In this document: piece after piece, positions 21,623 through 64,000 of the stretch | Position numbering within the stretch: position 1 is the stretch's first letter | Layout: every line of letters begins with the position of its first letter | NCBI GenBank assembly: GCA_002269645.1 | Contig: NIVC01000659.1 | Location: 426,232-490,231 of the forward strand | From: Macrostomum lignano | Lineage: Eukaryota | DNA: 64,000 nucleotides | Direction: 5' to 3' | The notes under the pieces: generated by a model | Seen by the model: the letters and a program-made list of their open reading frames with translations, nothing else | What the model was told of the DNA's origin: nothing | Database searches by the model: none | Program-made: the position numbers and the translations under genes

Positions 21623-22147
21623 CTTCTCAAGAAACTCTCTAACAGTTTTGTCATTCTTGCCAACCGCATTAGCCAGCCATTCGTTGTAAGCGCCAGACGG
21701 ATCTGTGCAGTAAAGATGCGGCGTGCCATCGACATTGAAGCCAACCAGCAGGGTAGACAGGCCGAATGGCCGCCGACCAGTGGACTGCGTGTACTTCTGC
21801 TTGATGCCGGCAACGAACCGGGCAATGTACTCCAACGTGACGGGATCTTCAACTGTCAAACGATGCGATTTACATTCCACTCGGGCGCGATTAATTAAAA
21901 TACGAGCATCGGCCGTCAAGCCGGCAAACGCCATGGCCACGTGATTGTCTAGTAGGGCCATTTTACGAACAGTTCGATCGTCCTGCAGCTTGGCAGCGGC
22001 TTTTTTCTCAACAGCCAGCACGGCGCAATTGCCGCCACGAATGCCAACAGCTGTGGAGCCTTTCTTCACGGCCTCCTGGGCGTATTCTACTTGGAATAGA
22101 TGGCCGTCTGGCGAGAAGACGGTGATGGCGCGATCGTAACGGGACAT
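21623..22147 (-). CDS. PSMA7: Proteasome subunit alpha type-7, exon 1
   Basis: [35 protein letters not shown] is the alpha-7/alpha4 signature; RPFGLS motif; donor AAG|gtgagt. Confidence 0.96.
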
Positions 22148-35030: not shown

Positions 35031-35849
35031 GACTGCAAGGGTTTGCTGTCACTGCCAATACTCCAAAGCCGATGTCAGTGGTCTCCGATACCCTCACTGA
35101 GTGCGGTTCGTCTAGCATTCCGAATTAATGTGATTTTGCCCCAGTCACCATCGGTCCAGCTTAACTCTCTGAGCCGTCTTTCCTTAAATAAAAAGCAGTT
35201 TTTTTTACTTAAAAGAAAGCATCTTTCCTCACTGTTGGTTATGATTTTGTTTATTCCTGATGAATTTATTCTCCTAATCTTCACTTGCCCCTTCTTTTTA
35301 ATGAACAATGGATTGCTAGCTAACATAAGTAGGACAGCACTAATCGTGATTACTCAGCCTAACAGATTAATAACTGCCCATATTCTTCTCAGCCTGTAGT
35401 TTCTGTGCCTTCCTCCATCTTCTTCTAATATACTATTCATTGTCTATTGTTGGGTTTTTCTATAAACTGCTTTTGACACAAAACTGTCAGATTGTTAAGC
35501 TGTCAGTTTAAGCACTCATGTAGATGTCATATGGATCTATATATTATTCTAGAAATTCTTGCTGTGATTTATTTATTATTGTGTTATTTTGCTCCATTGT
35601 CTCGCTTTTGTACATTATAAATTAATTTTAGTGCACATATTAATACTGTTTAATGCACTCAGTTCCTGTCTGTGAGGCTAGCTAAAGTGCAACAAGGGAG
35701 CCTTGTTGATACTTTAATGCTACAACTAATACAATCTAGAATCATCAAGCACACTGTTGATTTTCCCAAATGGCGAAATGGATTGTTAACAATTGGACCT
35801 TTTTTAATCCTGCTAATGCTGAAGCATGGCAGTTGACTGCCGAAGATTT

Positions 35850-36215
35850 AGGGTATTTGGGATAGTAGGGTTAGGATTAACGATTAGGGATTAGGGATTA
35901 CGGTTAGGGATTTGAGATTAGGGTTTATGGATTAGGGACTACGGGTTAGGGATTTGAGATTAGGGATTAGAGATTAAGGATTAGGGATTAAGCTTTGGGA
36001 TTAGGTATAGCTTATGGACTGGGGATTATTGTGTAGGGTTTATGGATTAGGAGTTAGGGTTTACTTAGGTATTATAGTTGTGTTTAGGGATTAAGGTTTA
36101 TGGATTATGGTTTAGAGATTAATGATTAGGTTGGGGATTAGAGCTTAGGTTTGAGTCTAGCAAATAGAAATTAGAATAGAGTTCATGTTAAGGTTCGGGT
36201 TAGGGTTAAGCAATG
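35850..36215. repeat. Degenerate (TTAGGGA)-like tract
   Basis: GGGATTA / GGGTTA units, heavily diverged. Confidence 0.75.
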
Positions 36216-36577: not shown

Positions 36578-37800
36578 TGTGACTCTCGCGACTCTGGAGC
36601 GACTCTTGTGACTCTAGCGACTCTGGAGCGACTCTTGTGACTCTAGCGACTCTGGAGCGACTCTTGTGACTCTAGCGACTCTTGTGACTCTAGCGACTCT
36701 TGTGACTCTAGCGACTCTTGTGACTCTAGCGACTCTTGTGACTCTAGCGACTCTTGTGACTCTAGCGACTCTTGTGACTCTAGCGACTCTTGTGACTCTA
36801 GCGACTCTGGAGCGACTCTTGTGACTCTAGCGACTCTGGAGCGACTCTTGTGACTCTAGCGACTCTTGTGACTCTAGCGACTCTTGTGACTCTAGCGACT
36901 CTTGTGACTCTAGCGACTCTTGTGACTCTAGCGACTCTTGTGACTCTAGCGACTCTTGTGACTCTAGCGACTCTTGTGACTCTAGCGACTCTTGTGACTC
37001 TAGCGACTCTTGTGACTCTAGCGACTCTTGTGACTCTAGCGACTCTTGTGACTCTAGCGACTCTTGTGACTCTAGCGACTCTTGTGACTCTAGCGACTCT
37101 TGTGACTCTAGCGACTCTTGTGACTCTAGCGACTCTTGTGACTCTAGCGACTCTTGTGACTCTAGCGACTCTTGTGACTCTAGCGACTCTTGTGACTCTA
37201 GCGACTCTTGTGACTCTAGCGACTCTTGTGACTCTAGCGACTCTTGTGACTCTAGCGACTCTTGTGACTCTAGCGACTCTTGTGACTCTAGCGACTCTTG
37301 TGACTCTAGCGACTCTTGTGACTCTAGCGACTCTTGTGACTCTAGCGACTCTTGTGACTCTAGCGACTCTTGTGACTCTAGCGACTCTTGTGACTCTAGC
37401 GACTCTTGTGACTCTAGCGACTCTTGTGACTCTAGCGACTCTTGTGACTCTAGCGACTCTTGTGACTCTAGCGACTCTTGTGACTCTAGCGACTCTTGTG
37501 ACTCTAGCGACTCTTGTGACTCTAGCGACTCTTGTGACTCTAGCGACTCTTGTGACTCTAGCGACTCTTGTGACTCTTGTGACTCTAGCGACTCTGGAGC
37601 GACTCTAGCGACTCTTGTGACTCTAGCGACTCTTGTGACTCTAGCGACTCTTGTGACTCTAGCGACTCTTGTGACTCTAGCGACTCTGGAGCGACTCTTG
37701 TGACTCTAGCGACTCTGGAGCGACTCTTGTGACTCTAGCGACTCTGGAGCGACTCTTGTGACTCTAGCGACTCTGGAGCAACTCTTGTGACTTTTTAGCG
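36578..37800. repeat. 18-bp minisatellite GACTCTTGTGACTCTAGC
   Basis: Long perfect core with GACTCTGGAGC variants at the edges. Confidence 0.97.
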
Positions 37801-39011: not shown

Positions 39012-39420
39012 GTGAGGTTACAATCCCATCCTACGCGAGGTTACAATTTCCCATTCTGCACGAGGTTACAATCCCATCCTGAGGTTACAATCCCATCCTA
39101 CGCGAGGTTACAATTTCCCATTCTGCACGAGGTTACAATCCCATCCTTCATTAGGTTAAATTCCCATCCTTCATAAGGTTTAACTCCCATCCTACACGAG
39201 GTTACAATCCCATTCTACTTGAGGTTACAATCGCATTCTACGTGAGGTTACAATCCCATTCTACATGAGGTTACAATCCCATTCTACATGAGGTTACAAT
39301 CCCATTCTACATGAGGTTACAATCCCATTCTAAATGAGGTTACAGTCCCATTCTACATGAGGTTACAATCCCATTCTACGTGAGGTTACAATCCCATTCT
39401 AAAACGAGGTTACAATCCTA
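39012..39420. repeat. 23-bp minisatellite GAGGTTACAATCCCATTCTACAT
   Basis: Tandem periodicity; homologous to the array at 41900-42735. Confidence 0.9.
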
Positions 39421-39594
39421 TTCGCTAAGCAAGTTGTGGTGGAATTTAAGTCGCTCCCATCTTTTCTCAGCCGGTTGTGTCAATGGTAAACCGGCCTCAT
39501 TTTAATTTAAAAAATCTGGTTAGAGAACAAACTCTATTGTCTGTGTTTTCGGTCTTAATTTTTTCAGAACTCCATATAGGCTCAGCAGATCGAT

Positions 39595-40070
39595 GACGCC
39601 CCTGTCTTGGTGGGCGCCCCTGTCTCTTGGTGGCTGCCCCTATTTCTTGGTGGGCGCCCCTGTCTCTTGGTGGGCGTTTGTGTCTCTTGGTGGGCGTTTG
39701 TGTCTCTTGGTGGGCGTTTGTGTCTCTTGGTGGGCGCCCCTGTCTCTTGGTGGGCGCCCCTGTCTCTTGGTGGCTGCCCCTATTTCTTGGTGGGCGCCAC
39801 TGTCTCTTGGTGACGCCCCTGTCTTGGTGGCTGCCCCTATTTCTTGGTGGGCGCCCCTGTCTCTTGGTGAGCGGCCCTGTCTCTTGTTGGGTGCCCCTGT
39901 CTCTTGGTGAGCGGCCCTGTCTCTTGTTGGGCGCCCCTGTCTCTTGGTGAGCGGCCCTGTCTCTTGTTGGGCGCCCCTGTCTCTTGATGGGCGCCCCTGT
40001 CTCTTGGTGGGTGCCCCTGTCCCATGGTACGCGCCCCTGTCTCTTGGTGGGCGCCCCTGTCTCTTGGCCC
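39595..40070. repeat. 20-bp minisatellite CTGTCTCTTGGTGGGCGCCC
   Basis: Direct tandem periodicity. Confidence 0.92.
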
Positions 40071-40164
40071 CCTCTGCAAACGCCACAATCAGTCCGTCTG
40101 CACCCGCTACCTGTTTAGTGGCGGCCATTTTGCTGTATCTGCTTGCAGGTGTCGGCCATGATGG

Positions 40165-40480
40165 CTGGCCACAGGCAGGCCCAGCTGCTCTTTGCTACCC
40201 AGTGAGTCGCATTGCCCTAATGACTCCTCTATCGCCTCGAACACGTCAAAAATATCGTCAGAGTTATCAAATAAGTGCCACCGCAACGTCCCACGGGATG
40301 ATTATCAACGTATTTTGCCGTTTTCAGCTTTCTCAATCAACGATTCTTCAACGACGTTGAATCCAACGGTTGGTATTTTTTGACCATTTGGGCCGGTCTT
40401 TGGCAAGGTTCAACAGGCTGGTGTTTCCAGTCGATGCTAAGACTGGCGACAACGAGAGATTGCAGGGGAAGTCGAAGTGT
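40165..40480 (-). pseudogene. Decayed ARF-family GTPase fragment
   Basis: Manual translation gives, in order, GNTSLL (G1-like), IPTVGFNV (40376-40353), WDV (40293-40285), HLFDNSD and LGLPVA, split over frames with stops. Confidence 0.6.
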
Positions 40481-40759
40481 ATAAAATTTAGTACTGCTAA
40501 TCTAGCAGGTTGGAGTTTTAAGCACTCACAGAATTTCGCATTCCTTATAAATATTCAACTGCAAGCCATAACTACCAATGGCGGTTCTTTTGTCGCATTT
40601 TAAGATACGTGCCGTAAAATGAAAGTTTGTTTATTTATAAATAAAATTTATTAACTCTAGCGAACGATTAGATACACTATACAGTAATATGGTAGATCTG
40701 TGAAGAAATAATCATGATTTAAAAGTCGCAGGCACAAGTCTCTTGCATCGTCCCCACAA

Positions 40760-41461
40760 CTACCGCAGCATCACGGACTTCACCAGGCTGTACAAGCCGC
40801 TCCTCCAGCCGGAGCCTGCTGTCAGCTCTGCAGCTTTGCTCACTTCACCGACCTTGTCAAGTCCCTCCTGCTCAGACAGGCTCTCCATCTCCAGCTCCTT
40901 CGGCAGCTCGTGCAGCGCGGAGGCGATCAGCCAGTCGACGGCTTCGGCCAGACCCGCTCCGGTAGCCGCCGAGACCTCGAAGCAGCGGCAGGGCCTTCGA
41001 ATCGATGCGGCCACCTTGCGCAGCTCATTGCAGGTCTCGGCTACGGCCTGGAGCTTCAGGTCGGACTTGTTGCACAGCAGCGCCAGCGGAATGTCGCCAA
41101 GTTCGCAGTCGTCCAGCTCGCTGCACAGCCTGTTGAGCTCGTCAACGGACTCGCCAAGGCGGTCTCGGTCTACGCCGTCCACAATGTACAACACACCGCG
41201 AGAGTTCGAGTAGTAGTGCCGGTACAGGGCGCGCGTCTTTTCCCGACCGCCTTGTCCAATGTCCCAGACGGTCAGGTTGGCCCGGCCTTCGATGCAAAGC
41301 TGCTCAACATTGAAGCCAATGGTGGGAATTGTGAACACGAGCTCTCCAGTTTTCAGTTTGTACAGAATCGAAGTCTTGCCGGCCGCGTCTAGGCCCCAGA
41401 TTAGGATGCGGAGGTCCGGGGTTCGACGACAGAGGAGCGCTGAACTGATAGCCTGACCCAT
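40760..41461 (-). CDS. ARF/ARL-family small GTPase, copy 1 (233 aa, intronless)
   Basis: Gly2; G1 GLDAAGKT; G2 [10 protein letters not shown]; G3 WDIGQGGR; G4 NKSD; G5 SAA; ~50-aa C-terminal extension. Confidence 0.92.
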
Positions 41462-41899
41462 GTTAAAATAAGCCTTTAAAAATGCAATGAGAAGCTCTCT
41501 AAAATGTAAACTTCATTTAAATGCCGCAGCTTTGAGGTGGCGTGTGAGCTTCCAGCCTGGCAGTCGGACAAGGAAAAAGGGTTGACGGCTACAGAAGAAT
41601 TGCTTTTGTTTATAGCTGGGCACGAATGTACATTGACTGTACGCGGGCCGGTCCTCTGTCTCCTCCGTACGTACGAGACTGCCACTTAGCAACGGCGCCA
41701 CTTGTATGCCCTGTTTCTCTCTGCTTCTCTCTTCATCTCTTACTCTGCATGTGTACTCTGAGTGCACTCTTTGAAAATGTTACAAGAGCTTTATCATGGC
41801 CGCGATGCGTCTGAGAATTTAGTGGAATTGTAACAACGGCCCAGTAGAGCAAAGAAAGCATTACGTAGAGCTGGATATCTCTTGGTTTATCGCAAAAAT

Positions 41900-42735
41900 C
41901 CCATCTTTTATGAGGTTAAACTCCCATCCTTCTTGAGGTTAAACTCCCATTCTTCATGAGGTTAAACTCCCATCCTTCATGAGGTTAAACTCCCATCCTT
42001 CTTGAGGTTTAACTCCCATTCTTCATGAGGTTAAACTCCCATCCTTCATGAGGTTAAACTCCCATCCTTCTTGAGGTTTAACTCCCATTCTTCATGAGGT
42101 TAAACTCCCATCCTTCATGAGGTTAAACTCCCATCCTTCTTGAGGTTTAACTCCCATTCTTCATGAGGTTAAACTCCCATCCTTCATGAGGTTAAACTCC
42201 CATCCTTCTTGAGGTTTAACTCCCATTCTTCATGAGATTAAACTCCCATTCTTTTTGAGGTTAAACTCCCATCCTTCTTGAGGTTAAACTCCCATTCTTC
42301 ATGAGGTTAAACTCCCATCCTTCATGAGGTTAAACTCCCATCCTTCTTGAGGTTTAACTCCCATTCTTCATGAGGTTAAACTCCCATCCTTCATGAGGTT
42401 AAACTCCCATCCTTCTTGAGGTTAAACTCCCATCCTTCTTGAGGTTAAACTCCCATTCTTCTTGAGGTTAAACTCCCATTCTTCTTGAGGTTAAACTCCC
42501 ATTCTTCATGAGGTTAAACTCCCATCCTTCTTGAGGTTAAACTCCCATCCTTCTTGAGGTTAAACTCCCATTCTTCTTGAGGTTTAACTCCCATTCTTCA
42601 TGAGGTTAAACTCCCATCCTTCATGAGGTTAAACTCCCATCCTTCTTGAGGTTTAACTCCCATTCTTCATGAGGTTAAACTCCCATTCTTCTTGAGGTTA
42701 AACTCCCATCCTTCTTGAGGTTACAATCCTATTCA
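41900..42735. repeat. 23-bp minisatellite GAGGTTAAACTCCCATCCTTCAT
   Basis: Tandem periodicity; paralog of 39012-39420. Confidence 0.93.
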
Positions 42736-43054
42736 ACATGAGGTTGATTCGACTCGTATCTGGGGCGCCCATCATGCAAGACCCTAATCATTAGCACCCA
42801 ATTAAATTAAAATATCTGCGCACCCTACTGAAAATTAGTACATATTGAGGTTTAGTTATGTAGATTTCCCAAGGAGAATTCGAACACACCAGTAACACAG
42901 CTTGATTTAATCGCATTTCTTAGCATTTCAAAAGAAAATCGTTATAAAAGTTATTGTATTTTACTATACAAATCAAATGTAATGCGGTGTATCTGTGCAG
43001 AAGTGATCATGATTTAAAAGTCGCAGGCACAAGTCTCTTGCATCGTCCCCACAA

Positions 43055-43750
43055 CTACCGCAGCATCACGGACTTCACCAGGCTGTACAAGCCGCTCCTC
43101 CAGCCGGAGCCTGCTGTCAGCTCTGCAGCTTTGCTCACTTCACCGACCTTGTCAAGTCCCTCCTGCTCAGGCAGGCTCTCCCTCTCCAGCTCCTTCGTCA
43201 GCTCGTGCAGCGCGGAGGCGATCAGCCAGTCGACGGCTTCGGCCAGACCCGCTCCGGTAGCCGCCGAGACCTCGAAGCAGCGGCAGGGCCTTCGAATCGA
43301 TGCGGCCACCTTGCGCAGCTCATTGCAGGTCTCGGCTACGGCCTGGGGCTTCAGGTCGGACTTGTTGCACAGGAGCGCCAGCGGAATGTCGCCAAGTTCG
43401 CAGTCGTCCAGCTCGCTGCACAGCCTGTTGAGCTCGTCAACGGACTCGCCAAGGCGGTCTCGGTCTACGCCGTCCACAATGTACAACACACCGCGAGAGT
43501 TCGGGTAGTAGTGCCGGTGCAAGGCGCGCATCTTGTCGCGACCGCCAATGTCCCAAATAGTGAGCTTTGCCCGGCCTTCCACGCTTACCAGCTCAACATT
43601 GAAGCCAATGGTGGGAATTGTGCACAGGAGCTCTCCAGTTTTCAGTCTGTACAGAACAGATGTCTTGCCGGCCGCGTCTAGGCCGCAGATTAGGATGCGG
43701 AGGTCCGGGGTTCGACGACAGATTAACGCTGAACTGACGCTCTGACCCAT
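43055..43750 (-). CDS. ARF/ARL-family small GTPase, copy 2 (231 aa, intronless)
   Basis: Same G-box set with G3 WDIGGRDK; C-terminal two-thirds nearly identical to copy 1. Confidence 0.92.
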
Positions 43751-45132: not shown

Positions 45133-46849
45133 TAATTTATTTTTAATGCGTAATACATACAAATTGTAGAGTTTAATGTGTAGAAATTGTCCTTTCCCTT
45201 AACGTATACCATAGCAGGCATTGAAATTTTCTGACCAGGTTAGAGCTCCGCTCCACAGTGGCAATGAACAGCTGGTTGTTGTTAAACGGGGGTGGGAGGC
45301 GTGTGCCTATCGCGGATCCTGCGGAGGGGCTCTGCCGCAGGATATTTAGGGCCATAAATTAACTACCAGGGGCATAGAGCCCGAGAGGCCCAGATTGGGA
45401 CTAGGACTCAAGGGCCTAGTTAAATAGCCTTATTGGATGCAACCAACCCAAGCCTATGGACTAAGACACCGCCTACTCACAGTGGAAAATTTTGGAAAAT
45501 TACTAGAAAGCGGTCCGAGAGCGGAAAGACCCGAGTCTACGGAAATGGCTTTCAGATTGGAGCGAGTCTGGGCAGCTTATTTACCAAGGGCGAGTCTCCT
45601 ATCAGGTAGGCAGAAGCTACAAGATCCTCCTATAGGGCTGCAAGCCACAAGGCTTTTTCACTACCCAGCTCTAATAAGCCCAAGACTAGGGGTTGGAGAA
45701 GGGGCACCAAAGAGCAAAGGGACACCGGACTCAGCCGGTATTCTCCGACTCGGGACGAAAAGCAACCCCAGGACACCAATCCACAGTCAGTGATGAGAGC
45801 CAGAGACACAATAATGAAGTACACGCTGTTTGCTTCCCGGATTAGGCCCTTGGGGATTACCTTAAACCTCGAGCCTCTTCAGTGGGAAGTCCTTTCAGCG
45901 CGCAGTAGCGTAGGTAGTGCTGCCACCAGTTCCTTCAGGTCTCAGCCTTCGGCGAGGTGAGCTTCCCGTCGGAACGAAATAAACAAGTCAACGAACTCAG
46001 CACAGCGTGCAGATTTGCAGATTAATGAACAAGGCGTCCTGATCAGCAGATCCCCGCCGGGCTCAGGGGTGGCTGGGAAGGCAGTGTTAGCCTCCCTTAG
46101 GCTTGGGCGTCTAAGTTTTAGTCAGGCCAATTGGTGATAGCTTAAATGGGCAACTGAACGAAGTCCGGAAAACTAGACAAGAAGAAGATTCCGAAGACGA
46201 ATAGTCAGAATCTCAGGCACTCGGCTACAAATACTGATGACTGAAAACTGAAAGCTGAAAACTCCTTGACGGAAACAAAGGGGAGAGGGGTCCTATTTAT
46301 AGCCGGGAAACACCCGCGCAGAAGACCTCGTGACTCGTTCTATTTTTAGAACTGACGTCACTTGAGAGTCTCGGGCAGAGTACTAGCGCGCGGAAGACCT
46401 CGTGACTTGTTCTATTTTTAGAACTGACGTCACTTGAGGGTCCCCCGGCAGAGTGCACATGGCTGTGACTCAGTTGCTATTTTTAGCAACATGAGTCACT
46501 CCTCTCCTTAGAGAAGGGAGGGGACCGAAAGCATGTGACTCTCCCGGTAAACAGGGCCAGCAAGTGCAGTAAACATGTTTACTGCACTTTAAGACTTCAA
46601 GAAAGCAAGGCAAGGGGAAAGCAAGGGGAAACAGAGACTGACGAAACAAGGACAACCCACAACAGAGAGGCTGAGGGCTGAGAAACGAAGGGCAGCACGG
46701 GCAGAAGGAGGGAAGGGAGCAGCAACAGACAGCCAAAAGGAGGGAGGCGGGAAGCTGACCAGCGGCAGACAGCAACCCAGGGCGAGGGCGAGGGCAAGGG
46801 CAACTGCTGACAAAGTGCGACGCCTAACACCAACTAGCGGATCACTACA
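45133..46849 (-). mobile_element. Truncated LTR element: 5' LTR (46849 to ~45930), PBS and non-coding leader
   Basis: Begins TGTAGTGATCCGCTAG, as does the LTR at 59509; TATAAA box; PBS-like TGGTGGCAGC at 45928-45919. No canonical CA end immediately before the PBS; no recognisable gag. Confidence 0.72.
46340..46589. promoter_or_regulatory. LTR enhancer cluster: 3 MEF2, 2 CRE, 2 AP-1, forkhead palindrome
   Basis: CTATTTTTAG at 46340, 46412 and 46477; TGACGTCA at 46353 and 46425; TGACTCA at 46466 and TGAGTCA at 46492; 28-bp perfect palindrome at 46562-46589. Function inferred from consensus matches. Confidence 0.6.
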
Positions 46850-46899: not shown

Positions 46900-47764
46900 A
46901 CATGGACCAGAAAGGGTAGAGCTCATAACTCCAAAGCTTGGGCGGCTGAATTGCCAGGGATAAAACACGAAGCTAAAAGCACAACGCGTGCAACCAGGGG
47001 GCTCAAGTCCCGATCTAGCCACACTGCAGTACAGTGTCACAATCACACCAGGTACACCCCCCTAAACCAAGGCAGGGCAGCCGCTGGATGAGTGTCACAC
47101 GGATGAGATCAACAACTAGCTTGGCTGCGGCGAATGTGATACGAGATCATTTTCGAAACTTTGGAGTGCCAGAGAAGCTATTCAGTGATGGAGGCCCGCA
47201 GTTTTCTGCTCGCGAGTTTCGACAGACAATGGCTGAGTTTAAGGTGGAGCACCGAACCTCGAGTCCGACGTACCCGCAGTCGAACGGGAGAGCCGAGCGC
47301 TACGTACAGACAGCCAAAAAACATGCGGAAGAAATGCTCCGAGACAGGCCAAAGTCTGGAGTTGGCACTGCTTCCCTACCACATCACTCCGGTCGGCAGC
47401 GGCTTTCCAAGCCCGGCGGAGATGGCTTTCGGCCGTAAGCTTCGTTGTGACCGCAGCGAATTTCAAGGACTTGCGGCCAAAGGAAACTCATCTTCACTCT
47501 AGCATTGAGGCTTTTTAAAAGGAGCGCGTTAGAGCAGCGCAGCTGTACAATCGCGGAGCTCGACCGTTGCAGAAACTAGCAGCTGGTGATCTGGTGTGGT
47601 TACAACGCGGTCGTCGCGAGTGGGTGGCAGCTGAGATTGATAGCGATTGTGAAAACTCTCCAAGTTCGTACTTGGTTCAAACAGAGACTGGACAGTTGCT
47701 CAGACGGAACCGTCGCTTCATCAGGCCATATTATTGCATTACTTTCTGCGTTCATCTAATATAG
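46900..47764 (+). mobile_element. Degenerate Ty3/Gypsy integrase fragment
   Basis: FGVPEKLFSDGGPQF...HRTSSPTYPQSNGRAER, then SPAEMAFGRKLR and SYLVQTETGQLLRRNRRFIRP; frameshifted. Confidence 0.85.
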
Positions 47765-50490: not shown

Positions 50491-52915
50491 ATGCAATGCC
50501 ACTGCGTGCTGCTCTCCCTTGTCCTGTGCGTGTCGCTCGTTCCGTGCGCCTCTGCCGCAGAGTTTCAAGTGGACTTCTTGAAGAAGATGCCTGAAATTAT
50601 CTACACCTTCTACGAGAAGTAGAGCTCGAACTGGACCTCAACATCACTAAGGTCGCCACGGAGAGTCCCGACGGGAAGCGGAAAGTCACCGGACTGAAGG
50701 TGATACCTGAACATGGAATGCAAAAGCAGGACTTCGGTGCCACCGTGCTGGGTCGAGTGTCCAGCGATGGAGCCTCCGGCAAACTGGTCTTCGTGTGCAG
50801 AACCTTGCGCAGGTGCATAAACATTGGGAAAAAATCACCAATCATCCGCTCTTCATCCAGCAGGCTGTGCAGTTCGCGCCCTTCGGTTTGCAGGGCCCCA
50901 TTCCCACTCAGTTCGGTGCCGTCCGCTCTTCATCAGGCCCTGCACCCCTCGCTGAGGTGGTCTTCCAGAGGCACCTGGACAACAGCCTCTCGTTCGCCCA
51001 GAACTGGCACGGCTACGTGAAAGGATTCGGAGATCCCAACGGCAATTACTGGATGGGTGAGTAGAGTAATCTGTTTACATCAGCTCACTATAAACCTGTG
51101 CATCAGTAAGAACTGCCAGCAAGGCCAGGCCGTAAAACTTAAATATCGTATAACTTCTGAAGGCCTTTTTCCTGGAAAAAATACACTGTTAAAATAGGAA
51201 AAATCATTTGTCATCACAAAATCAACGATTGCATTCGATCCGGGCAGTGAAAATTACCATTTGTTTTATTTAGACTGCAAAAGCTTTACTCTGTTGTATT
51301 GTATTTTTCCATAGTTGTATCGTGAAGTTTCATTGTCATGTTGTTTTTTAATTCATAAGCCCAAGGTTGTAAATGTTGTACTGGCAGTCTTGGGCCATTG
51401 TTGTAAGTAGCTATATATAATTCAATTTGAACGCAGTTAGAAAAGCTCCTCATAGCTATTTTAATTCCTAGACCTGACCTAAATAACCAAAGGTAGATAA
51501 TGTTTACATTATAATTTTTTGTATTGTAGTTCAGAAAGCAATCAGTTTTGAGTCAGGCTTTAGCCTGGATTTTTATTACAAAAATATCGTAATTGATTAG
51601 ACTCGATGAAAGAAGGAGCAAAACAAAACCCTGAGCTATAATGCCACTTGTGAGTATTTACAACTTTGGGCATAGGAAATAAGAAGCCCAGATCATCAAA
51701 TGCAGTCGTTTATTTTGTGATGAAAAAAGATTTTTTCCTATCTCCACGGTAGATTTTTCCAGGATTCAAAAATGGTCTAAAGAAATTACACGATATTTGA
51801 GTTTTACATTTGAGGCCTGCGGCTGAGTGACACTGAAGTATTGAGCCAAATCCGTGCCACTATCGCTAGCTATCTTAAGTTCCACAGCAGCAACCAATTA
51901 ATGAATCGTGCTCAGTCTGGCTCAGGGCATCAAGTAACAAAGATAACCAATAGCACTCACCACCAGAGAGAAAGGCATCGATCCGATTTGATGTATGTTT
52001 GACGAACGTGTTTAACAGGCATTCTCACAAATCACACGAAGGTACAGAACAGTTTCAGGTGCATCTGATTATCCAATTTCTTGCTTTGCTCGTATAAAGT
52101 TTCTCAAAGTTTAAGATTTGTAAATTTCCTGATTTTCTGGGTTGTAAAATTTCCAATGGGGCTGAGTGAGCATAGTCAGCGAACGCTCTAACATGTTAAA
52201 TACGCGGGGCTGCGTACTTTGTTGTTGCTCTAAAGACACGGCGACGTGCATGAGTGAGGGCGTTGAGTTCCTACAAAAGGAAGACTCACTTGGCACTTTT
52301 AAGACAAAGAAGAGTCGAGACAAAGACGATTAAGTTGCTGAACCTGACAAAAGGCTCAGCGTCTTTTGAAGTGGTTGCTGGGTGGAATTTGAGGGCTTAG
52401 TCGAACAGTACTGTATGGAGGTGAAAAATTAAAAAAATAAATTAAAGCAGTTTTTTAACTCATCAATCTGACAGGTTTAGAGCAGCTTTAATTAGCCATG
52501 ACAAAAGATCGCTATTGCAAGCTCATCTGAGGGAGTCCGACTCAACGGCAAAGTTTTGCGTGCGACTTTCAAGGACTTCGGGTTGCGCGGAGCGGACGAG
52601 AATTACAAGCTGGTGCTCGGAGACCAGGAGCCGGGTGGCGACCTCTGGAAGGAAACGGCAGCGTATCACAACGGAATGTAGTTCAGCACCTTCGATGCGG
52701 ATAACGATAATTGGCCAGGAGGGACATGCAGCACAGGAAATTACGATCGTATTGGCTGGTGGTTCAACGGTGGGGGTGACGAATGTCAGCGTTTTAATCC
52801 AAATGGTTTGATTTCTTACTCAAACAGCACATGCTGGGGTTATTGCTCAGCAATGAACGCACACAAATTACGGGTGTGCACAAAGAGCGCGAAGCTGTCC
52901 TTCAGCTGCAGCTGA
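50491..52915 (+). pseudogene. Secreted fibrinogen C-terminal domain (FReD) protein pseudogene, 2 exons (50491-51056, 52475-52915)
   Basis: Signal peptide MQCHCVLLSLVLCVSLVPCASA; VFQRHLDNSLSFAQNWHGYVKGFGDPNGNYWMG|LEQL; YHNGM*FSTFDADND; GWWFN. In-frame stops at 50620, 52489 and 52679 plus frameshifts. Confidence 0.85.
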
Positions 52916-52978
52916 GGCAAACCTGCTGGACCGGCTTATGTTGGGGACTGTGCAGTCTGCTTAAGTTTCACCTAATAA

Positions 52979-55900
52979 AGGGGATGTCAACTTAAGCACC
53001 AGAATGGAGCCCGAAGTTCAGCTCCGGCCCAAACCGACTGCAATCGATAACTTGTCGGCCCAGACGACTAGAATCGCCGAGACATCCCATCCGGCTCCCT
53101 TCCTTGGGGTCCCAGGGGATAAAGGGGATAAAATGGGGATCTCATGTCAACTTAAGGCTCTGGAATGGAGCCCGAAGTTCAGCTCCGGACCAAACCGACT
53201 GCAATCGATAACTTGTCGGCCCAGACGACTAGAATCGCCGAGACATCCCATCCGGCTCCCTTCCTTGGGGTCCCAGGGGATAAAGGGGATAAAATGGGGA
53301 TCTCATGTCAACTTAAGGCTCTGGAATGGAGCCCGAAGTTCAGCTCCGGACCAAACCGACTGCAATCGATAACTTGTCGGCCCAGACGACTAGAATCGCC
53401 GAGACATCCCATCCGGCTCCCTTCCTTGGGGTCCCAGGGGATAAAGGGGATAAAATGGGGATCTCATGTCAACTTAAGGCTCTGGAATGGAGCCCGAAGT
53501 TCAGCTCCGGACCAAACCGACTGCAATCGATAACTTGTCGGCCCAGACGACTAGAATCGCCGAGACATCCCATCCGGCTCCCTTCCTTGGGGTCCCAGGG
53601 GATAAAGGGGATAAAATGGGGATCTCATGTCAACTTAAGGCTCTGGAATGGAGCCCGAAGTTCAGCTCCGGCCCAAACCGACTGCAATCGATAACTTGTC
53701 GGCCCAGACGACTAGAATCGCCGAGACATCCCATCCGGCTCCCTTCCTTGGGGTCCCAGGGGATAAAGGGGATAAAATGGGGATCTCATGTCAACTTAAG
53801 GCTCTGGAATGGAGCCCGAAGTTCAGCTCCGGACCAAACCGACTGCAATCGATAACTTGTCGGCCCAGACGACTAGAATCGCCGAGACATCCCATCCGGC
53901 TCCCTTCCTTGGGGTCCCAGGGGATAAAGGGGATAAAATGGGGATCTCATGTCAACTTAAGGCTCTGGAATGGAGCCCGAAGTTCAGCTCCGGCCCAAAC
54001 CGACTGCAATCGATAACTTGTCGGCCCAGACGACTAGAATCGCCGAGACATCCCATCCGGCTCCCTTCCTTGGGGTCCCAGGGGATAAAGGGGATAAAAT
54101 GGGGATCTCATGTCAACTTAAGGCTCTGGAATGGAGCCCGAAGTTCAGCTCCGGCCCAAACCGACTGCAATCGATAACTTGTCGGCCCAGACGACTAGAA
54201 TCGCCGAGACATCCCATCCGGCTCCCTTCCTTGGGGTCCCAGGGGATAAAGGGGATAAAATGGGGATCTCATGTCAACTTAAGGCTCTGGAATGGAGCCC
54301 GAAGTTCAGCTCCGGACCAAACCGACTGCAATCGATAACTTGTCGGCCCAGACGACTAGAATCGCCGAGACATCCCATCCGGCTCCCTTCCTTGGGGTCC
54401 CAGGGGATAAAGGGGATAAAATGGGGATCTCATGTCAACTTAAGGCTCTGGAATGGAGCCCGAAGTTCAGCTCCGGCCCAAACCGACTGCAATCGATAAC
54501 TTGTCGGCCCAGACGACTAGAATCGCCGAGACATCCCATCCGGCTCCCTTCCTTGGGGTCCCAGGGGATAAAGGGGATAAAATGGGGATCTCATGTCAAC
54601 TTAAGGCTCTGGAATGGAGCCCGAAGTTCAGCTCCGGACCAAACCGACTGCAATCGATAACTTGTCGGCCCAGACGACTAGAATCGCCGAGACATCCCAT
54701 CCGGCTCCCTTCCTTGGGGTCCCAGGGGATAAAGGGGATAAAATGGGGATCTCATGTCAACTTAAGGCTCTGGAATGGAGCCCGAAGTTCAGCTCCGGAC
54801 CAAACCGACTGCAATCGATAACTTGTCGGCCCAGACGACTAGAATCGCCGAGACATCCCATCCGGCTCCCTTCCTTGGGGTCCCAGGGGATAAAGGGGAT
54901 AAAATGGGGATCTCATGTCAACTTAAGGCTCTGGAATGGAGCCCGAAGTTCAGCTCCGGCCCAAACCGACTGCAATCGATAACTTGTCGGCCCAGACGAC
55001 TAGAATCGCCGAGACATCCCATCCGGCTCCCTTCCTTGGGGTCCCAGGGGATAAAGGGGATAAAATGGGGATCTCATGTCAACTTAAGGCTCTGGAATGG
55101 AGCCCGAAGTTCAGCTCCGGCCCAAACCGACTGCAATCGATAACTTGTCGGCCCAGACGACTAGAATCGCCGAGACATCCCATCCGGCTCCCTTCCTTGG
55201 GGTCCCAGGGGATAAAGGGGATAAAATGGGGATCTCATGTCAACTTAAGGCTCTGGAATGGAGCCCGAAGTTCAGCTCCGGACCAAACCGACTGCAATCG
55301 ATAACTTGTCGGCCCAGACGACTAGAATCGCCGAGACATCCCATCCGGCTCCCTTCCTTGGGGTCCCAGGGGATAAAGGGGATAAAATGGGGATCTCATG
55401 TCAACTTAAGGCTCTGGAATGGAGCCCGAAGTTCAGCTCCGGCCCAAACCGACTGCAATCGATAACTTGTCGGCCCAGACGACTAGAATCGCCGAGACAT
55501 CCCATCCGGCTCCCTTCCTTGGGGTCCCAGGGGATAAAGGGGATAAAATGGGGATCTCATGTCAACTTAAGGCTCTGGAATGGAGCCCGAAGTTCAGCTC
55601 CGGCCCAAACCGACTGCAATCGATAACTTGTCGGCCCAGACGACTAGAATCGCCGAGACATCCCATCCGGCTCCCTTCCTTGGGGTCCCAGGGGATAAAG
55701 GGGATAAAATGGGGATCTCATGTCAACTTAAGGCTCTGGAATGGAGCCCGAAGTTCAGCTCCGGCCCAAACCGACTGCAATCGATAACTTGTCGGCCCAG
55801 ACGACTAGAATCGCCGAGACATCCCATCCGGCTCCCTTCCTTGGGGTCCCAGGGGATAAAGGGGATAAAATGGGGATCTCATGTCAACTTAAGGCTCTGG

Positions 55901-56287
55901 AATGGAGCCCGAAGTTCAGCTCCGGCCCAAACCGACTGCAATCGATAACTTGTCGGCCCAGACGACTAGAATCGCCGAGACATCCCATCCGGCTCCCTTC
56001 CTTGGGGTCCCAGGGGATAAAGGGGATAAAATGGGGATCTCATGTCAACTTAAGGCTCTGGAATGGAGCCCGAAGTTCAGCTCCGGACCAAACCGACTGC
56101 AATCGATAACTTGTCGGCCCAGACGACTAGAATCGCCGAGACATCCCATCCGGCTCCCTTCCTTGGGGTCCCAGGGGATAAAGGGGATAAAATGGGGATC
56201 TCATGTCAACTTAAGGCTCTGGAATGGAGCCCGAAGTTCAGCTCCGGACCAAACCGACTGCAATCGATAACTTGTCGGCCCAGACGA
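52979..56287 (+). repeat. Left arm: about 20.5 copies of the 161-bp unit
   Basis: ORF track recurs every 161 nt from 53004 to 56224. Confidence 0.98.
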
Positions 56288-56823
56288 TTATTCCATTCAA
56301 AACATCGATAGCTACGAAGGTGACTCCTGGAGAGACTTTGAGTTACACATCCAAGCCGCCGGGAGTGTTGGAAGTTTCGGCAAGCGACGCCGCTAGAAAC
56401 TGGAGCAACCGATTCGGTCGGTGGCATCCGTCTTGATTTTTCTTGATTTGATTCTGCCATAATTCAAAATCCTACCGCGTGATTCTTAGAGTGTGTGACA
56501 GCAGCGGACAATCGCTTTGGTTTTAGAGATCCAGGATTGCAACTTCTTCCTGGCTTCTACTCGTCAGCAAAAGCAGGAAGTAGGACTGCAGGCTGCGATT
56601 GTCATGTACGAGCGTAATGGCATTGCTCAAACTCCTGGGCTGCTACGCTTACCACCAAGATACATATGTAGCTATCGAAGGTCTGGTGCCGGCCTTCGCT
56701 TTGTTGATTTCGCTCTTCCACGCAGCCTTGTTGCCAGACTTTATGCTAGAGAAAACGCTTTACCACAGCAGCGAAAGCCTACTGAGCAACATTTTAGGGG
56801 CCAGCGAGAGGAGTTTCAGTCAG

Positions 56824-59368
56824 CCCAAGGAAGGGAGCCGGATGGGATGTCTCTGCGATTCTAGTCGTCTGGGCCGACAAGTTATCGATTGCAGTCGGTT
56901 TGGGCCGGAGCTGAACTTCGGGCTCCATTCCAGAGCCTTAAGTTGACATGAGATCCCCATTTTATCCCCTTTATCCCCTGGGACCCCAAGGAAGGGAGCC
57001 GGATGGGATGTCTCGGCGATTCTAGTCGTCTGGGCCGACAAGTTATCGATTGCAGTCGGTTTGGGCCGGAGCTGAACTTCGGGCTCCATTCCAGAGCCTT
57101 AAGTTGACATGAGATCCCCATTTTATCCCCTTTATCCCCTGGGACCCCAAGGAAGGGAGCCGGATGGGATGTCTCGGCGATTCTAGTCGTCTGGGCCGAC
57201 AAGTTATCGATTGCAGTCGGTTTGGGCCGGAGCTGAACTTCGGGCTCCATTCCAGAGCCTTAAGTTGACATGAGATCCCCATTTTATCCCCTTTATCCCC
57301 TGGGACCCCAAGGAAGGGAGCCGGATGGGATGTCTCGGCGATTCTAGTCGTCTGGGCCGACAAGTTATCGATTGCAGTCGGTTTGGTCCGGAGCTGAACT
57401 TCGGGCTCCATTCCAGAGCCTTAAGTTGACATGAGATCCCCATTTTATCCCCTTTATCCCCTGGGACCCCAAGGAAGGGAGCCGGATGGGATGTCTCGGC
57501 GATTCTAGTCGTCTGGGCCGACAAGTTATCGATTGCAGTCGGTTTGGTCCGGAGCTGAACTTCGGGCTCCATTCCAGAGCCTTAAGTTGACATGAGATCC
57601 CCATTTTATCCCCTTTATCCCCTGGGACCCCAAGGAAGGGAGCCGGATGGGATGTCTCGGCGATTCTAGTCGTCTGGGCCGACAAGTTATCGATTGCAGT
57701 CGGTTTGGTCCGGAGCTGAACTTCGGGCTCCATTCCAGAGCCTTAAGTTGACATGAGATCCCCATTTTATCCCCTTTATCCCCTGGGACCCCAAGGAAGG
57801 GAGCCGGATGGGATGTCTCGGCGATTCTAGTCGTCTGGGCCGACAAGTTATCGATTGCAGTCGGTTTGGGCCGGAGCTGAACTTCGGGCTCCATTCCAGA
57901 GCCTTAAGTTGACATGAGATCCCCATTTTATCCCCTTTATCCCCTGGGACCCCAAGGAAGGGAGCCGGATGGGATGTCTCGGCGATTCTAGTCGTCTGGG
58001 CCGACAAGTTATCGATTGCAGTCGGTTTGGGCCGGAGCTGAACTTCGGGCTCCATTCCAGAGCCTTAAGTTGACATGAGATCCCCATTTTATCCCCTTTA
58101 TCCCCTGGGACCCCAAGGAAGGGAGCCGGATGGGATGTCTCGGCGATTCTAGTCGTCTGGGCCGACAAGTTATCGATTGCAGTCGGTTTGGTCCGGAGCT
58201 GAACTTCGGGCTCCATTCCAGAGCCTTAAGTTGACATGAGATCCCCATTTTATCCCCTTTATCCCCTGGGACCCCAAGGAAGGGAGCCGGATGGGATGTC
58301 TCGGCGATTCTAGTCGTCTGGGCCGACAAGTTATCGATTGCAGTCGGTTTGGTCCGGAGCTGAACTTCGGGCTCCATTCCAGAGCCTTAAGTTGACATGA
58401 GATCCCCATTTTATCCCCTTTATCCCCTGGGACCCCAAGGAAGGGAGCCGGATGGGATGTCTCGGCGATTCTAGTCGTCTGGGCCGACAAGTTATCGATT
58501 GCAGTCGGTTTGGTCCGGAGCTGAACTTCGGGCTCCATTCCAGAGCCTTAAGTTGACATGAGATCCCCATTTTATCCCATTTATCCCCTGGGACCCCAAG
58601 GAAGGGAGCCGGATGGGATGTCTCGGCGATTCTAGTCGTCTGGGCCGACAAGTTATCGATTGCAGTCGGTTTGGGCCGGAGCTGAACTTCGGGCTCCATT
58701 CCAGAGCCTTAAGTTGACATGAGATCCCCATTTTATCCCCTTTATCCCCTGGGACCCCAAGGAAGGGAGCCGGATGGGATGTCTCGGCGATTCTAGTCGT
58801 CTGGGCCGACAAGTTATCGATTGCAGTCGGTTTGGTCCGGAGCTGAACTTCGGGCTCCATTCCAGAGCCTTAAGTTGACATGAGATCCCCATTTTATCCC
58901 CTTTATCCCCTGGGACCCCAAGGAAGGGAGCCGGATGGGATGTCTCGGCGATTCTAGTCGTCTGGGCCGACAAGTTATCGATTGCAGTCGGTTTGGTCCG
59001 GAGCTGAACTTCGGGCTCCATTCCAGAGCCTTAAGTTGACATGAGATCCCCATTTTATCCCCTTTATCCCCTGGGACCCCAAGGAAGGGAGCCGGATGGG
59101 ATGTCTCGGCGATTCTAGTCGTCTGGGCCGACAAGTTATCGATTGCAGTCGGTTTGGTCCGGAGCTGAACTTCGGGCTCCATTCCAGAGCCTTAAGTTGA
59201 CATGAGATCCCCATTTTATCCCCTTTATCCCCTGGGACCCCAAGGAAGGGAGCCGGATGGGATGTCTCGGCGATTCTAGTCGTCTGGGCCGACAAGTTAT
59301 CGATTGCAGTCGGTTTGGTCCGGAGCTGAACTTCGGGCTCCATTCTGGTGCTTAAGTTGACATCCCCT
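56824..59368 (-). repeat. Right arm: about 15.8 copies of the same unit, inverted
   Basis: Reverse-complement units every 161 nt. Confidence 0.98.
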
Positions 59369-59508: not shown

Positions 59509-60187
59509 TGTAGTGATCCGCTAGTTTGGTGTTAGGCGTCGCACTTGGTCAGTAGTTTCCCTCGCCCTCGCCCTCGCCCTGGGGTCGCTGTTTGCCGCTG
59601 GTCAGCTTACTGGTGGCCTGTTTCCCCTTGACTGGTGACTTGCTCACATGACAGACCTTGTTTTCTTGAAGTCCTAAAAGTGCAGTAAACATGTTTACTG
59701 CACTCGCTGGTCTGTGTTTACGGCAGAATCACTTGCCTAAGGCCCATTCCTTCTCTAAGGAAAGGAGTGACTCATGTTTCTAAAAATAGATACTGAGTCA
59801 CAACCTAGTGCACTCTGCCAGGAGACCCCAAGTGACGTCAGGTCTAAAAATAGAACAAAGTCACCAGGTCTTGTGCGTTGGGGCAGTGGAGAATCCCGCG
59901 CTATAAATACAGACCCCCTCACCCTTTGTCGGATTTCCATCCTCCAATTATTTGTACTTTCTGTTTTGCAATTCAGCCTTGTACTTTTCAGTTAGCCGAC
60001 TCCCTTCGTCTGCCATGCTCTTCCCCACAGACAATCTCAATCGTTAATTCACCATAGATTATACAACTAACCTGTTCATTCTGTTAGTATAAATACAAGT
60101 TAAACTCGCGGATTAAGCCCTTCACCTTTTTTCTTTCTGCACCACTAATAACATATTATTAGTTATTAGTTTATTGTCTATTCGACA
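59509..60187 (+). mobile_element. 5' LTR of a BEL/Pao retrotransposon (679 bp)
   Basis: TG...CA ends; TATAAA at 59902; followed by PBS-like TGGTGGCAG at 60192-60200, which matches a tRNA-Leu-type 3' end. Confidence 0.82.
59679..59907 (+). promoter_or_regulatory. LTR enhancer/promoter: forkhead palindrome, AP-1-MEF2-AP-1, CRE-MEF2, TATA
   Basis: 26-bp palindrome at 59679-59704; TGACTCA 59768; CTAAAAATAG 59780; TGAGTCA 59794; TGACGTCA 59833; CTAAAAATAG 59844. Confidence 0.6.
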
Positions 60188-63100
60188 ATTTTGGTGGCAG
60201 AGCGTCATGGTCATCACACGATCGATAACTGACCAATCTGGCGACCAGACCCATCAGTCCCAGAATGACCACAGCACAGCCTCTGCAGAAGCGACCACTG
60301 CCACGGAGCAGCCACCCGTCGAAGCCAGCGACCCCCACCAGCCGCTTCATCCGCCACATCTGCTCCTCCCGCTGCTCCTTCTACGGCTCCGATATCTGCA
60401 ACAGCTCCACTGCCTCCGTCGACGTCAACGCCCTCCTGACCGCAATGACTGCGATGATGCAGCAGAACCAGCAGCTCATTCAGCAGCTCGCCGCCACCGT
60501 CCGTCCAGCCTCGACACCAGTTGCCTCAACGCCCGCATCAGATGCGCACGATCCGGCCGGGCTCATCCGCTCCACTGTCCTCAAAAAGGTCCGTCTCCCG
60601 ACATTCGACGGCACCGACCCTGCTGCATTTCCCGGGTTCTGGGACGCCTTCATCTACCGCGTCGACCAATCCAGCCTCAACGACGTCGACAAGTTCGAGG
60701 CACTCCGCGGTCTTCTATCCGGCCCCGCCCTCAGGAAGCTGGGCGCCCTTGATGCCTACCAACCCAACGCCTACGCCGAGGCCTGCCGCGTTCTCCAGGC
60801 TAACTACGCTGACGCGCAGGAGCAGAAAGACACCTGCTTCCAACGCCTCCTCGGACTATACTGCAGCTCTGCCTCCGACGTAGACGAGCTCGAGACCTTT
60901 ACCGACGCCCTCCGACTCGCTACCGGCCAGCTCCTCCGCCTTGGCGAGCCCGCCTTCACCCTCGACGGCTACGTCTACGCTCTCTGGAGCCGCCTCCCGA
61001 TCGAGCTGCAGAACGAGATCGGCAACCTTCGTGCTGCCAACGGGCAGCCTCTCGTGCCAACCATGACACAGCTCCAGAGCCACCTTGACTGTAAACTTAG
61101 GACTCTCCGGGCTGCCGCCACGACTACACCGACAGCGCCCTTTGCTACCGCAGACTTCCTGGGCAACACTGACTCTCAGCCGCCAATAGCGCGCTACCCC
61201 AGTGATCGCCGCCAGTCCACCACTCCTCGCACGGGCGCCACCCTTCACCACGTCACTCTGCACGCTTCGCTCCACCAACCAGCAACAGCACAAGCCCAGC
61301 CACTCATGCCTCTATTGCAACAGCTCCGAACATACCACCATGTCCTGCTGCAACATCCGCAAGCCGATGACCGGCTTAAAATCGTTCGAAATAAGAACCT
61401 TAGCCACAACTGCCTTCGCCGACACCAAACCAAGGACTGCCGCGACAACCGACGCTGTCGTATGTGCGACGCCGCACACCACACCTCGCTGTACGGGGCC
61501 TCCTTCGACGCCCGCTCCAGCCATCGCTCACCACCTAAGACAGCCCAAAACGCTCACGTTAATTCAAGTGGTGACGCCGACTCCAAAGAGACAGCCAACT
61601 CCCTAGTCTCTGCCGCAGCCGACGGAGGTCTCGTGCCGACCATCATGGCTACCTTCCGGGCGAAGGCCGTCAACCCAAAAGATGGCCGCTCCGTCGACTG
61701 CACAATTCTTCTCGACTCAGGCTGCTCGTACTCGCATCTCGACGGCACCGTTGCCCACAAGCTTGGCCTCAAATCCACCAAGAGACTCTCGATAGCCACC
61801 TCCACCTTCCACTCAGAGTCCAGGCGTCAGATAACGGCGGACCTCGTCAGTTTCGACTTCCAGGCCCCAGACGGTCGCCGCTGGCCAATCACAGCCCTCG
61901 CCTCCGACCAGCTAGCAGCCCCGATCCAAATACCGGCCGTAAAGCCCCCTGAAGATGTCCTTAACACCCTGGGCAGTGTCAACAACGGCGTCTGCAACCT
62001 CCCGCCCGACCACGATACAGACGGTACCCTCGACCTCATCCTCGGTGGTGACGTGAACCAGTTACTCACCGGTCTTGCAATTTCTGTCCTCGCTCTTCGA
62101 CCAACTCTAACGGCCTACCTGACGCCCTTCGGAGCTATCCTCAACGGTGCCATCAACGACACGGGTGCCCGCAACATCAACAGCTTCCTCGGGTCCTCTC
62201 AGGTTCTCGTCGCTAACACCTACCTCAACATCAACAACGACAACCTTCACCTCGACCGACTCCTGGACCACATGTCCAACCTTGAAGCTCTCGGCATAGC
62301 AAAGGATGCTGGAAGGCCGGACCCCAAGGATGACAGGCTCACTAAGCACCTGCTCGACACCATCACGCGTGATTCTGATGGTCGAAGCTCAGTCGACTTG
62401 CCATTTAAAATCAGCGCTGAACTGCTCTCATCAAACTTCGGGCAAGCCTTAGGACGAGCGCAGGCCACGCACCGGCGACTAAGCCTCCCGGAGCGAGAAG
62501 CCTACTACGCCGAGTTCGAAAAACGGAAAGCCGAAGGAGTCTTAGAGCGAGTTGACCCCAAGCGAGACAACAACGGGCAGATCCTTCACGTTCTACCGCA
62601 CTTCCCTGTCATCAAGGAAAGCTCGAATACCACAAAAATTCGCCCCGTTGTCGACGCATCAGCAAAGACCTCTCTTGCCGGCGCTACGCTCAATGATTTT
62701 CTAGAGCCTGGACCAAACCTGTTGACCTCTCTACTCCAAATCCTTTTAGTCCATCGCGCCCACCGCTTCGCCATCTCGTCCGACTTCCAAGCTGCGTTCT
62801 ATCAGATCGGGGTCAATGAACGCATCAATCTACGTATCATTGTCCAAGAGACATCTCTCAACCGCTCATCGACGGCAACTTTGAAAAATGGCGCCTCACC
62901 CGCATCGTCATGGGTGCTTCTCCCAGCCCGTGGATCCTTCTCGCAGTCCTGCCACAAGATTTGTCTCGACGCTCTTAACTCTGGAGAAACATGTCTGACT
63001 CGTACCGAGCTCGAACGCGTCATAGGTGGTCTCTACTTCGACAATCTAGAATCGTCGGAACCGACACTGAGGAGGACGCCGCCCGACTAGTCCGTGGACT

Positions 63101-63730
63101 TTGCGAGCTCTTCCGGCGTGCCTGCTTTCATCTTTGCGAGTTTGCCACAAACCTGCCCAGCTGCCTCTCCACGATTCCCAATGAGGATTGCATCCGCAGC
63201 CACAAATTCGGCCTTCTGGGTCTCACCTGGGCCACCAACGCAGACCGCATCACCCTCAAGAAGCCCAACCTGCCACGCCCAGAGGAACTGACCCGCCGAA
63301 AGATATGCCAAGGTGTCCACACCCCCTACGACCAGCCGGTTACGCCGCTCCACTCATACTCAGCGGTCGTCTTCTATACCGCCACGCTTTCCAAGCCACC
63401 GATCACTGGGACGAGATCGCCAGCTCTGAAATCAGAGACGCCTGGGCAAAGCTCGCACCAGATTCTCCGCCTCGACGAAGTCACCGTGCCGCGCTTCGCC
63501 ATTAAGGACGCCAGCTACTCAGTTCGTCTCGTTATTTTATCTGACGGTGCTCCTGGGGCCTATGGTTTTGCCATCTACGCCTGGCAGTGCGTCGGTTCCA
63601 GCGTCTCCTGCCGCCTCATCTTCGCTAAAGCTCGACTCACCCCAGCCACCAAAGCAAGGCCTCCTCGTCACGGTTCCGCGACTCGAACTCTGGGCAGCCT
63701 CAGTCATCCTCGACGCAATGCGCAGCCACT
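60188..63730 (+). mobile_element. BEL/Pao gag-pol internal region, frameshifted and truncated before integrase
   Basis: Gag LPTFDG..FWDAF; Zn knuckles; protease ILLDSGCSYS; RT LPHFPVIKES..KIRPVVDAS, LNDFLEPGPNL, SDFQAAFYQI, LYFDN; RNase H ILSDGAPGAYG, LIFAKARL, PRLEL, spread over several frames. Confidence 0.92.
60265..63090 (+). pseudogene. Longest remaining BEL gag-protease-RT ORF (941 aa), partly out of frame
   Basis: Probable true start MVITRS at 60207 is in another frame. The first knuckle (CLYCNSSEHTTMSC) and the RT motif WRLTRIVMGASPSPW are also in alternative frames. Confidence 0.8.
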
Positions 63731-64000
63731 TGCAGTTCGAAGGGGGGGGCGTAGCCCAGCGGTAGCGCAGCTGCTCTGGTGTGCCAGCGACCCAGGCCGA
63801 TTCCAAGTGCAGTCACATTAATTTGGGGCTGAATTGGAATCTCGGCTTGGCCTCTGCTCGGCAATTAACGGCCTTGAGAGCCAACCCCCCAAGGCGCAGT
63901 GAAGTGTACATGCCTAACGATAATATACAGTTAGGGCCGCTGTACACTCCTGTGTGAGTGTGTGCCTGTGTACGTATCGCGCGCTTGTGTGCCTGCTCAG

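Follow-up and report, generated by a model that had tools for sequence, protein, structure and literature searches.

Inverted arrays of a 161-bp repeat in Macrostomum lignano: a candidate non-autonomous foldback-type element

In the Macrostomum lignano genome assembly GCA_002269645.1, a 64-kb stretch of contig NIVC01000659.1 (positions 426,232 to 490,231 of the forward strand; hereafter the window) carries two arrays of a 161-bp repeat that face each other across a short unique spacer and together occupy 6.4 kb, from position 52979 to position 59368. Is this structure a mobile element whose arms consist of satellite-like repeats, a local rearrangement of a satellite array, or a product of the assembly? 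The inverted arrays around their 536-bp spacer are real and exact. We favour, with even confidence, their reading as a non-autonomous foldback-type DNA element with inverted arms made of the 161-bp repeat, specialised terminal units and a short non-coding middle. Two sets of features lead us there: a single diverged terminal unit closes both arms, with similarity ending within a base or two, and the unequal arms, their differing repeat number and the short non-coding middle match the published anatomy of foldback elements. Mobility is unproven, there being no insertion footprint and a single copy found. Searches of DNA for copies, termini, spacer and partners cover the window unless stated otherwise.

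Arm architecture and spacer

Tandem Repeats Finder delimits two arrays with a period of 161 bp, one of 20.5 copies at 52984-56287 and one of 15.8 copies at 56824-59363, each with 99% matches, and the consensus units of the two are reverse complements of each other. Read unit by unit, the left arm (52979-56287, 3309 bp, with the G-rich strand on +) opens with AGGGG and a terminal unit of 160 bp, continues with 19 full units of 161 bp and closes with a partial unit of 85 bp. The inverted right arm (56824-59368, - strand, 2545 bp) runs from a 126-bp partial unit through 14 full units to a 160-bp terminal unit and CCCCT. The distance from anchor to anchor is 161 bp throughout both arms, the exception being the first distance at each outer end, which is 160 bp. 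An in-register comparison starting at the outer ends finds 8 mismatches between the arms over 2546 bases, an identity of 99.69%. Variation from unit to unit is confined to two single changes and a polymorphism (A/C) at unit position 46 that occurs in both arms. All 36 units seen lie within the window. Head-to-tail, homogeneous monomers of 161 bp with 99% matches are characteristic of satellite DNA, for which we took a monomer range of about 150-180 bp. Long terminal inverted arms, here of 3309 and 2545 bp, are a trait of the foldback class, and so is a tandem repeat number that is unequal between the arms (20.5 against 15.8 units). Every checkable detail of the arrays, spacer and ends given in an earlier note on this DNA proved correct on repeat finding and unit-by-unit reading.

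The spacer, or middle domain (56288-56823, 536 bp), is single-copy in the window. It resembles neither the unit nor the flanks, its internal symmetry goes no further than short chance repeats, and its open reading frames (ORFs) have no match in Pfam; a non-repetitive middle domain free of Pfam matches is again a foldback-class trait. Neither the spacer nor the arms have coding capacity. An ORF of 122 amino acids that overlaps the arrays was considered as a gene and rejected: it corresponds to no exact protein record and to no Pfam family, and a homology search of 5.8 billion proteins returned no homologue. Since the homology search and Pfam were both empty, we regard this ORF as an artefact of the repeat.

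What speaks for an assembly artefact, be it a falsely inverted segment or a chimeric palindromic read in the satellite, is that the assembly of near-identical repeats is difficult and that the inversion is known from the assembly only. The arms, however, are not mirror images of each other. Anchored at the centre they are 26% identical, they end against the unique spacer at different unit phases (position 85 in the left arm, position 126 in the right), and the order of the position-46 variants differs between them. Two distinct junctions between unit and unique sequence flank the 536-bp spacer, and the window is free of gaps. This combination of asymmetric arms, separate junctions and gapless sequence is not what a single false join or a chimeric palindromic read would give. 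The 6.4-kb element is moreover shorter than typical long reads, a further count against an artefact, which we consider highly improbable.

Termini, rival origins and insertion footprint

The outermost unit of each arm differs from the internal ones. In the left terminal unit (52979-53143, +), AAGCACCAGAATGG replaces AAGGCTCTGGAATGG of the internal unit, and GGGGAT joined to GTCAAC replaces the inter-unit join GGGGATCTCATGTCAAC. The right terminal unit (59204-59368, -) equals the left one save at the polymorphic position 46. Within the window this variant is restricted to both outer ends, and the terminal 29-mer AGGGGATGTCAACTTAAGCACCAGAATGG occurs exactly twice, at 52979-53007 (+) and 59340-59368 (-), against a chance expectation of 0. 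These two sites bear out the claim that one special terminal variant closes both outer ends. The inverted identity extends one base past AGGGG, to give AAGGGG...CCCCTT, and then ends. No similarity to the unit above that of shuffled controls is found in 300 bases of each flank, and the boundaries are therefore sharp. A possible degenerate unit in the left flank (a CTTAAG...CACC echo) was rejected as no better than chance. The edge of the array and the edge of the inverted copy thus coincide within a base or two, a coincidence that is simply explained by a defined mobile terminus and not by a random duplication breakpoint. With sharp and identical inverted termini, and arms wholly made of tandem repeats, the structure is a discrete one, as it had been taken to be at first.

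The position of these edges also bears on a non-transpositional origin, in which a short satellite array would have been duplicated locally in inverted orientation by template switch or fold-back repair, its arms being later resized separately. Such a copy must have its end no more than one or two bases away from the true array edge; the flanks beyond AAGGGG share nothing, and by our estimate a random breakpoint would coincide in this way roughly one time in hundreds. The missing target site duplication (TSD; see below), the single copy in the window and the near-identity of the arms are all in keeping with a local duplication. So is the setting: tandem arrays abound in the window, among them another inverted pair of related minisatellites (7795-8079 and 17809-18544). 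That pair, however, is only about 71% identical, with its members 10 kb apart, and is unlike the structure described here. We consider a local duplication somewhat unlikely. If the locus is nonetheless a one-off rearrangement of this sort, it is an ordinary structural oddity of a repeat-rich region.

A precise outer terminus on each arm, with inner truncation at arbitrary unit positions (85 and 126), would also be expected from two independent, head-to-head insertions of a one-ended array element, by 5'-truncated retroposition or a rolling-circle process, and a spacer of host DNA would be unique and non-symmetric, as this one is. Neither arm taken as a separate insertion is flanked by a TSD, though, and the defined end carries no poly(A) or other 3' tail. 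Two insertions landing 536 bp apart with no other copy in the window would require a strong target preference, and the arms are 99.7% identical. Two such insertions appear improbable to us.

Several observations weigh against the foldback reading itself. A scan for TSDs between 2 and 12 bp long, with the boundary shifted by -3 to +3 and about one mismatch in five tolerated, found none at any offset, and the 25-bp flanks share no k-mer of 5 or more. Foldback-class elements are flanked by TSDs of 7 bp (Galileo), 8-10 bp (Tetris) or 9 bp (FB), and none of these lengths is represented here. That no TSD is present genuinely weighs against a simple recent insertion. AGGGG...CCCCT ends flanked by TAA and TAC had been reported in the earlier note. 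The letters are correct, but the flanks are not a duplication: they match at two of three positions, which by our own calculation has a chance probability of roughly 15%, and they become ATA and ACA when the shared A/T pair is counted as part of the element. The affiliation to PIF/Harbinger proposed with these ends is not sustained, as there is neither the 3-bp TWA duplication of that superfamily nor a PIF-type transposase in the window. A partner combining a DDE transposase and a Myb-like ORF is absent from the window ORFs of at least 130 amino acids and from the selected ORFs scanned with Pfam, and no transposase with matching ends was found in the window. Its sole DNA transposase, a Tc1-like one, was rejected as a partner, its termini being unrelated.

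Relatives of the element are missing as well. The 64 kb contain no second occurrence of the unit, no solo terminus, no second copy of the spacer and no empty site. A second copy of the repeat in the right flank, at 46275-46849, was a candidate for such a site. It provides none because its homology stops at the boundary of an LTR (long terminal repeat), 140 bp from the element. Comparison with two Drosophila elements adds further difficulties. In Tetris, a unique flanking domain of up to 866 bp lies outside the repeats, an inner domain is also present and complete copies have TSDs of 8-10 bp (PMC4079207). Here, in contrast, there is no unique flanking domain and the repeats start at the very terminus. 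Chimeric copies of Galileo have non-matching flanks in place of TSDs (PMC3573991) but are a partial precedent only, since their terminal inverted repeats (TIRs) are unusually divergent (PMC3573991) whereas the arms here are 99.7% identical. If the structure is a foldback element, its missing TSD could result from an exchange between two copies at different sites, comparable to chimeric Galileo, or from loss. Finally, no external copy was found in the collections scanned, none of which contains the host genome, so that they are silent on copy number in the host. Pattern scans at the DNA level, run on contigs from metagenomes (two patterns), from viruses and from prokaryotic genomes, gave zero matches, as did a search of a collection of papers for literal strings of the element sequence.

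Relation to foldback elements and hairpin potential

In the FB elements of Drosophila melanogaster, the long inverted arms are tandem repeats up to the termini. The arms vary in length and are not equally long, the middle segment varies too, and the majority of copies are non-coding. Their repeats are short (10, 20 and 31 bp), their TSDs are of 9 bp, and they form a multi-copy family linked to Mutator/Phantom-type transposases. The Macrostomum element is FB-like in that its arms are tandem repeats reaching the termini, are of unequal lengths and have no coding capacity. It differs from FB in its satellite-sized unit of 161 bp and in that no TSD was found. The likeness to FB-type anatomy, of which a schematic is available (PMC4079207), was rightly drawn in the earlier note as regards inverted arms wholly of tandem repeats and identical termini.

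Tetris of Drosophila virilis has satellite-sized repeats of ~220 bp, TIR-220, in its long inverted arms, and these repeats are found also as satellite arrays; its middle domain is non-coding and no autonomous copy is known (PMC4079207). Satellite-sized repeats inside long inverted arms and a non-coding middle domain are likewise found here, while a TSD is not. The likeness is structural and a sequence relationship is not expected. Galileo, a member of the P superfamily in Drosophila, has long TIRs with internal tandem repeats whose number is unequal between arms (PMC3573991). The TIRs of Galileo measure about 0.9-1.3 kb and include 2-3 repeats, each of about 210 bp; its TSD is 7 bp long and a P-like transposase is known (PMC3573991). 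The element described here resembles Galileo in the differing tandem repeat number of its arms and in flanks without matching TSD, but each of its arms has 16-21 repeats and it has no known transposase. Both Tetris (PMC4079207) and Galileo (PMC3573991) are described as variable in arm length and in the middle domain. Mobile elements that bear tandem repeats are also found outside the foldback class: Xenopus miDNA4 and Xstir have satellite-like arrays that can expand (PMC12628747), and so do oyster Helentron elements (PMC7492417). Tandem-repeat MITEs (miniature inverted-repeat transposable elements) and Helitron/Helentron elements carry one direct array between conserved non-repetitive ends, whereas here the arrays are the inverted ends. 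Links between transposable elements and satellites have a broad literature, in which the seeding of satellites by a foldback element is documented for Tetris (PMC4079207, PMC12628747, PMC7492417).

If the structure is a foldback element, the terminal variant could be the end recognised by a transposase encoded elsewhere. The length of each arm might have changed independently through unequal exchange or replication slippage, and youth or gene conversion between the arms, or both, might keep them alike. The young age proposed at first is accordingly one reading of the 99.7% arm identity, and homogenisation between arms is another. A role of the element as a seed of satellite DNA may be envisaged by analogy to Tetris. 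The locus, a transposon-rich intergenic gap between a fibrinogen-domain (FReD) pseudogene and the LTR of a BEL/Pao retrotransposon, counts in favour of the foldback reading. We suggest more tentatively that this is the first copy to be seen of a foldback family not yet described, with arms made purely of a nucleosome-sized, G-quadruplex-bearing repeat, which would also yield free satellites and small RNAs from its long hairpins. Foldback elements with tandem-repeat arms have long been known; such a family would belong to an under-sampled lineage, and what would make it attractive is arms that are satellite from the first base and a G-quadruplex motif in each unit. If the element is mobile, the foldback-to-satellite route described for Tetris in Drosophila virilis would extend to a distant and little-studied animal lineage, and arms of pure satellite from the first base would offer a clean system for the study of satellite seeding and spread. 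Were the reading as a novel family true, the step from foldback element to satellite would be directly observable outside Drosophila.

Each full unit contains one canonical G-quadruplex motif, GGGGTCCCAGGGGATAAAGGGGATAAAATGGGG: the left arm has 20 of them on the + strand, the right arm 15 on the - strand, and the first of the series lies at 53106-53138 (+). The remaining 57.6 kb of the window have 5 such motifs in all. The unit is thus G-quadruplex-bearing, as had been claimed, in the sense of a sequence motif. Folded as RNA, the central 1.5 kb of the element is predicted to form a near-perfect stem of ~440 bp (-1162 kcal/mol). Together with the 99.69% identity of the arms, this stem agrees with the potential to form double-stranded RNA on read-through that the first reading had assigned to the element, and transcription through it would yield a hairpin of ~2.5 kb, a plausible substrate for small RNAs. 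The single unit has no excess structure when folded against shuffles (z = -0.69). A small hairpin at the unit start, which the terminal variant disrupts, is not significant and we therefore claim no structural role for it. Searches with Rfam (at the gathering threshold over the window and with E<=1 over the terminus) and for tRNAs gave no match, so that the unit is not visibly derived from a tRNA or a structured RNA.

The predicted hairpin raises the alternative that the locus is retained by the host as a source of hairpin RNA for small interfering RNAs or PIWI-interacting RNAs, a role that would be compatible with any origin of the arrays. A read-through transcript would form a near-perfect long hairpin, and immediately upstream of the element, on the same strand, there is a gene-like unit. 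Against such a role, the unit matches no possible target elsewhere in the window, the upstream gene carries an in-frame stop, and an AATAAA at the left edge (52974-52979), which overlaps the first base of the element, would tend to end transcripts coming from upstream. We judge a retained hairpin-RNA locus quite improbable. A near-perfect 2.5-kb inverted repeat with a G-quadruplex motif in each unit is likely to be prone to replication fragility and rearrangement and to produce small RNAs beside a gene.

Genomic neighbourhood

The gene-like unit upstream of the element is a FReD gene (50491-52915, +). Its first exon is signal-peptide-like, and Fibrinogen_C is matched at 50795-51064 and at 52682-52816. 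Its last coding stretch (52556-52915, +) is interrupted by an in-frame stop at 52679-52681 and its frame ends 63 bp before the element. Because the stop falls inside the conserved HNGM-x-FST motif, the gene is probably a pseudogene. A MITE-like pair of 110-bp inverted repeats, 78% identical and ~455 bp apart, is found in its intron (51132-51239 and 51695-51807).

On the other side, at a distance of 141 bp from the element, the LTR of a BEL/Pao retrotransposon (59510-64000, +) begins near the sequence TGTAGTG at 59510. The gag-pol ORFs of the retrotransposon (60265-63090 and 62991-63821) include a gag domain (DUF1759) and a Peptidase_A17 domain; pol is divided between two frames, and the retrotransposon continues beyond the window. 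The LTR copy at 46275-46849 is inverted (-), diverged (77-92%) and contains an internal 72-bp tandem duplication (46315-46454). An integrase-core fragment is found at 47034-47438. The Tc1-like transposase is encoded by an apparently intact ORF of 416 amino acids (23228-24478, -) with DDE_3 and HTH domains, and short inverted repeats occur near it at 22956-22971 and 24312-24327.

Positions 1-45000 of the window are unusually dense in long homogeneous minisatellites with units of 18-33 bp, including TTAGGG-like interstitial arrays. Examples are at 1063-2543, 4251-5859, 6375-6954, 21115-21543, 35848-36149 and 36581-37774. This density may indicate a subtelomeric or otherwise recombination-prone region. 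A GA-rich tract of ~1 kb lies at 27.7-28.8 kb. The related minisatellites at 7795-8079 and 17809-18544 (28-bp and 25-bp units, ~71%, inverted and ~10 kb apart) bracket DUS1-like exons at 9240-9698 and 17151-17702. ARF-like GTPase genes are present in tandem duplicate (40760-41461 and 43055-43750, both -), and each adjoins a 23-bp minisatellite (39013-39423 and 41895-42745) whose units are related by eye, which suggests a segmental tandem duplication of gene and minisatellite over 39013-43750.

The housekeeping proteins tried, PSMA7 and DUS1L, led to no close annotated relative. PSMA7 is ~82% identical to its counterparts of molluscs, annelids and bryozoans alike and 96% identical to one protein derived from RNA-seq, with 80% at the DNA level, while the identity of DUS1L is flat across Metazoa (60-68%). 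Aligned to the transcript of a relative, the PSMA7 coding sequence (20753-22147, -) falls in two blocks, 22147-21621 and 20983-20753. With PSMA7 in two blocks and several other genes present as long single ORFs, the genome looks intron-poor. A ubiquitin/AN1 zinc-finger gene and an NHL-repeat ORF are also present in the window.

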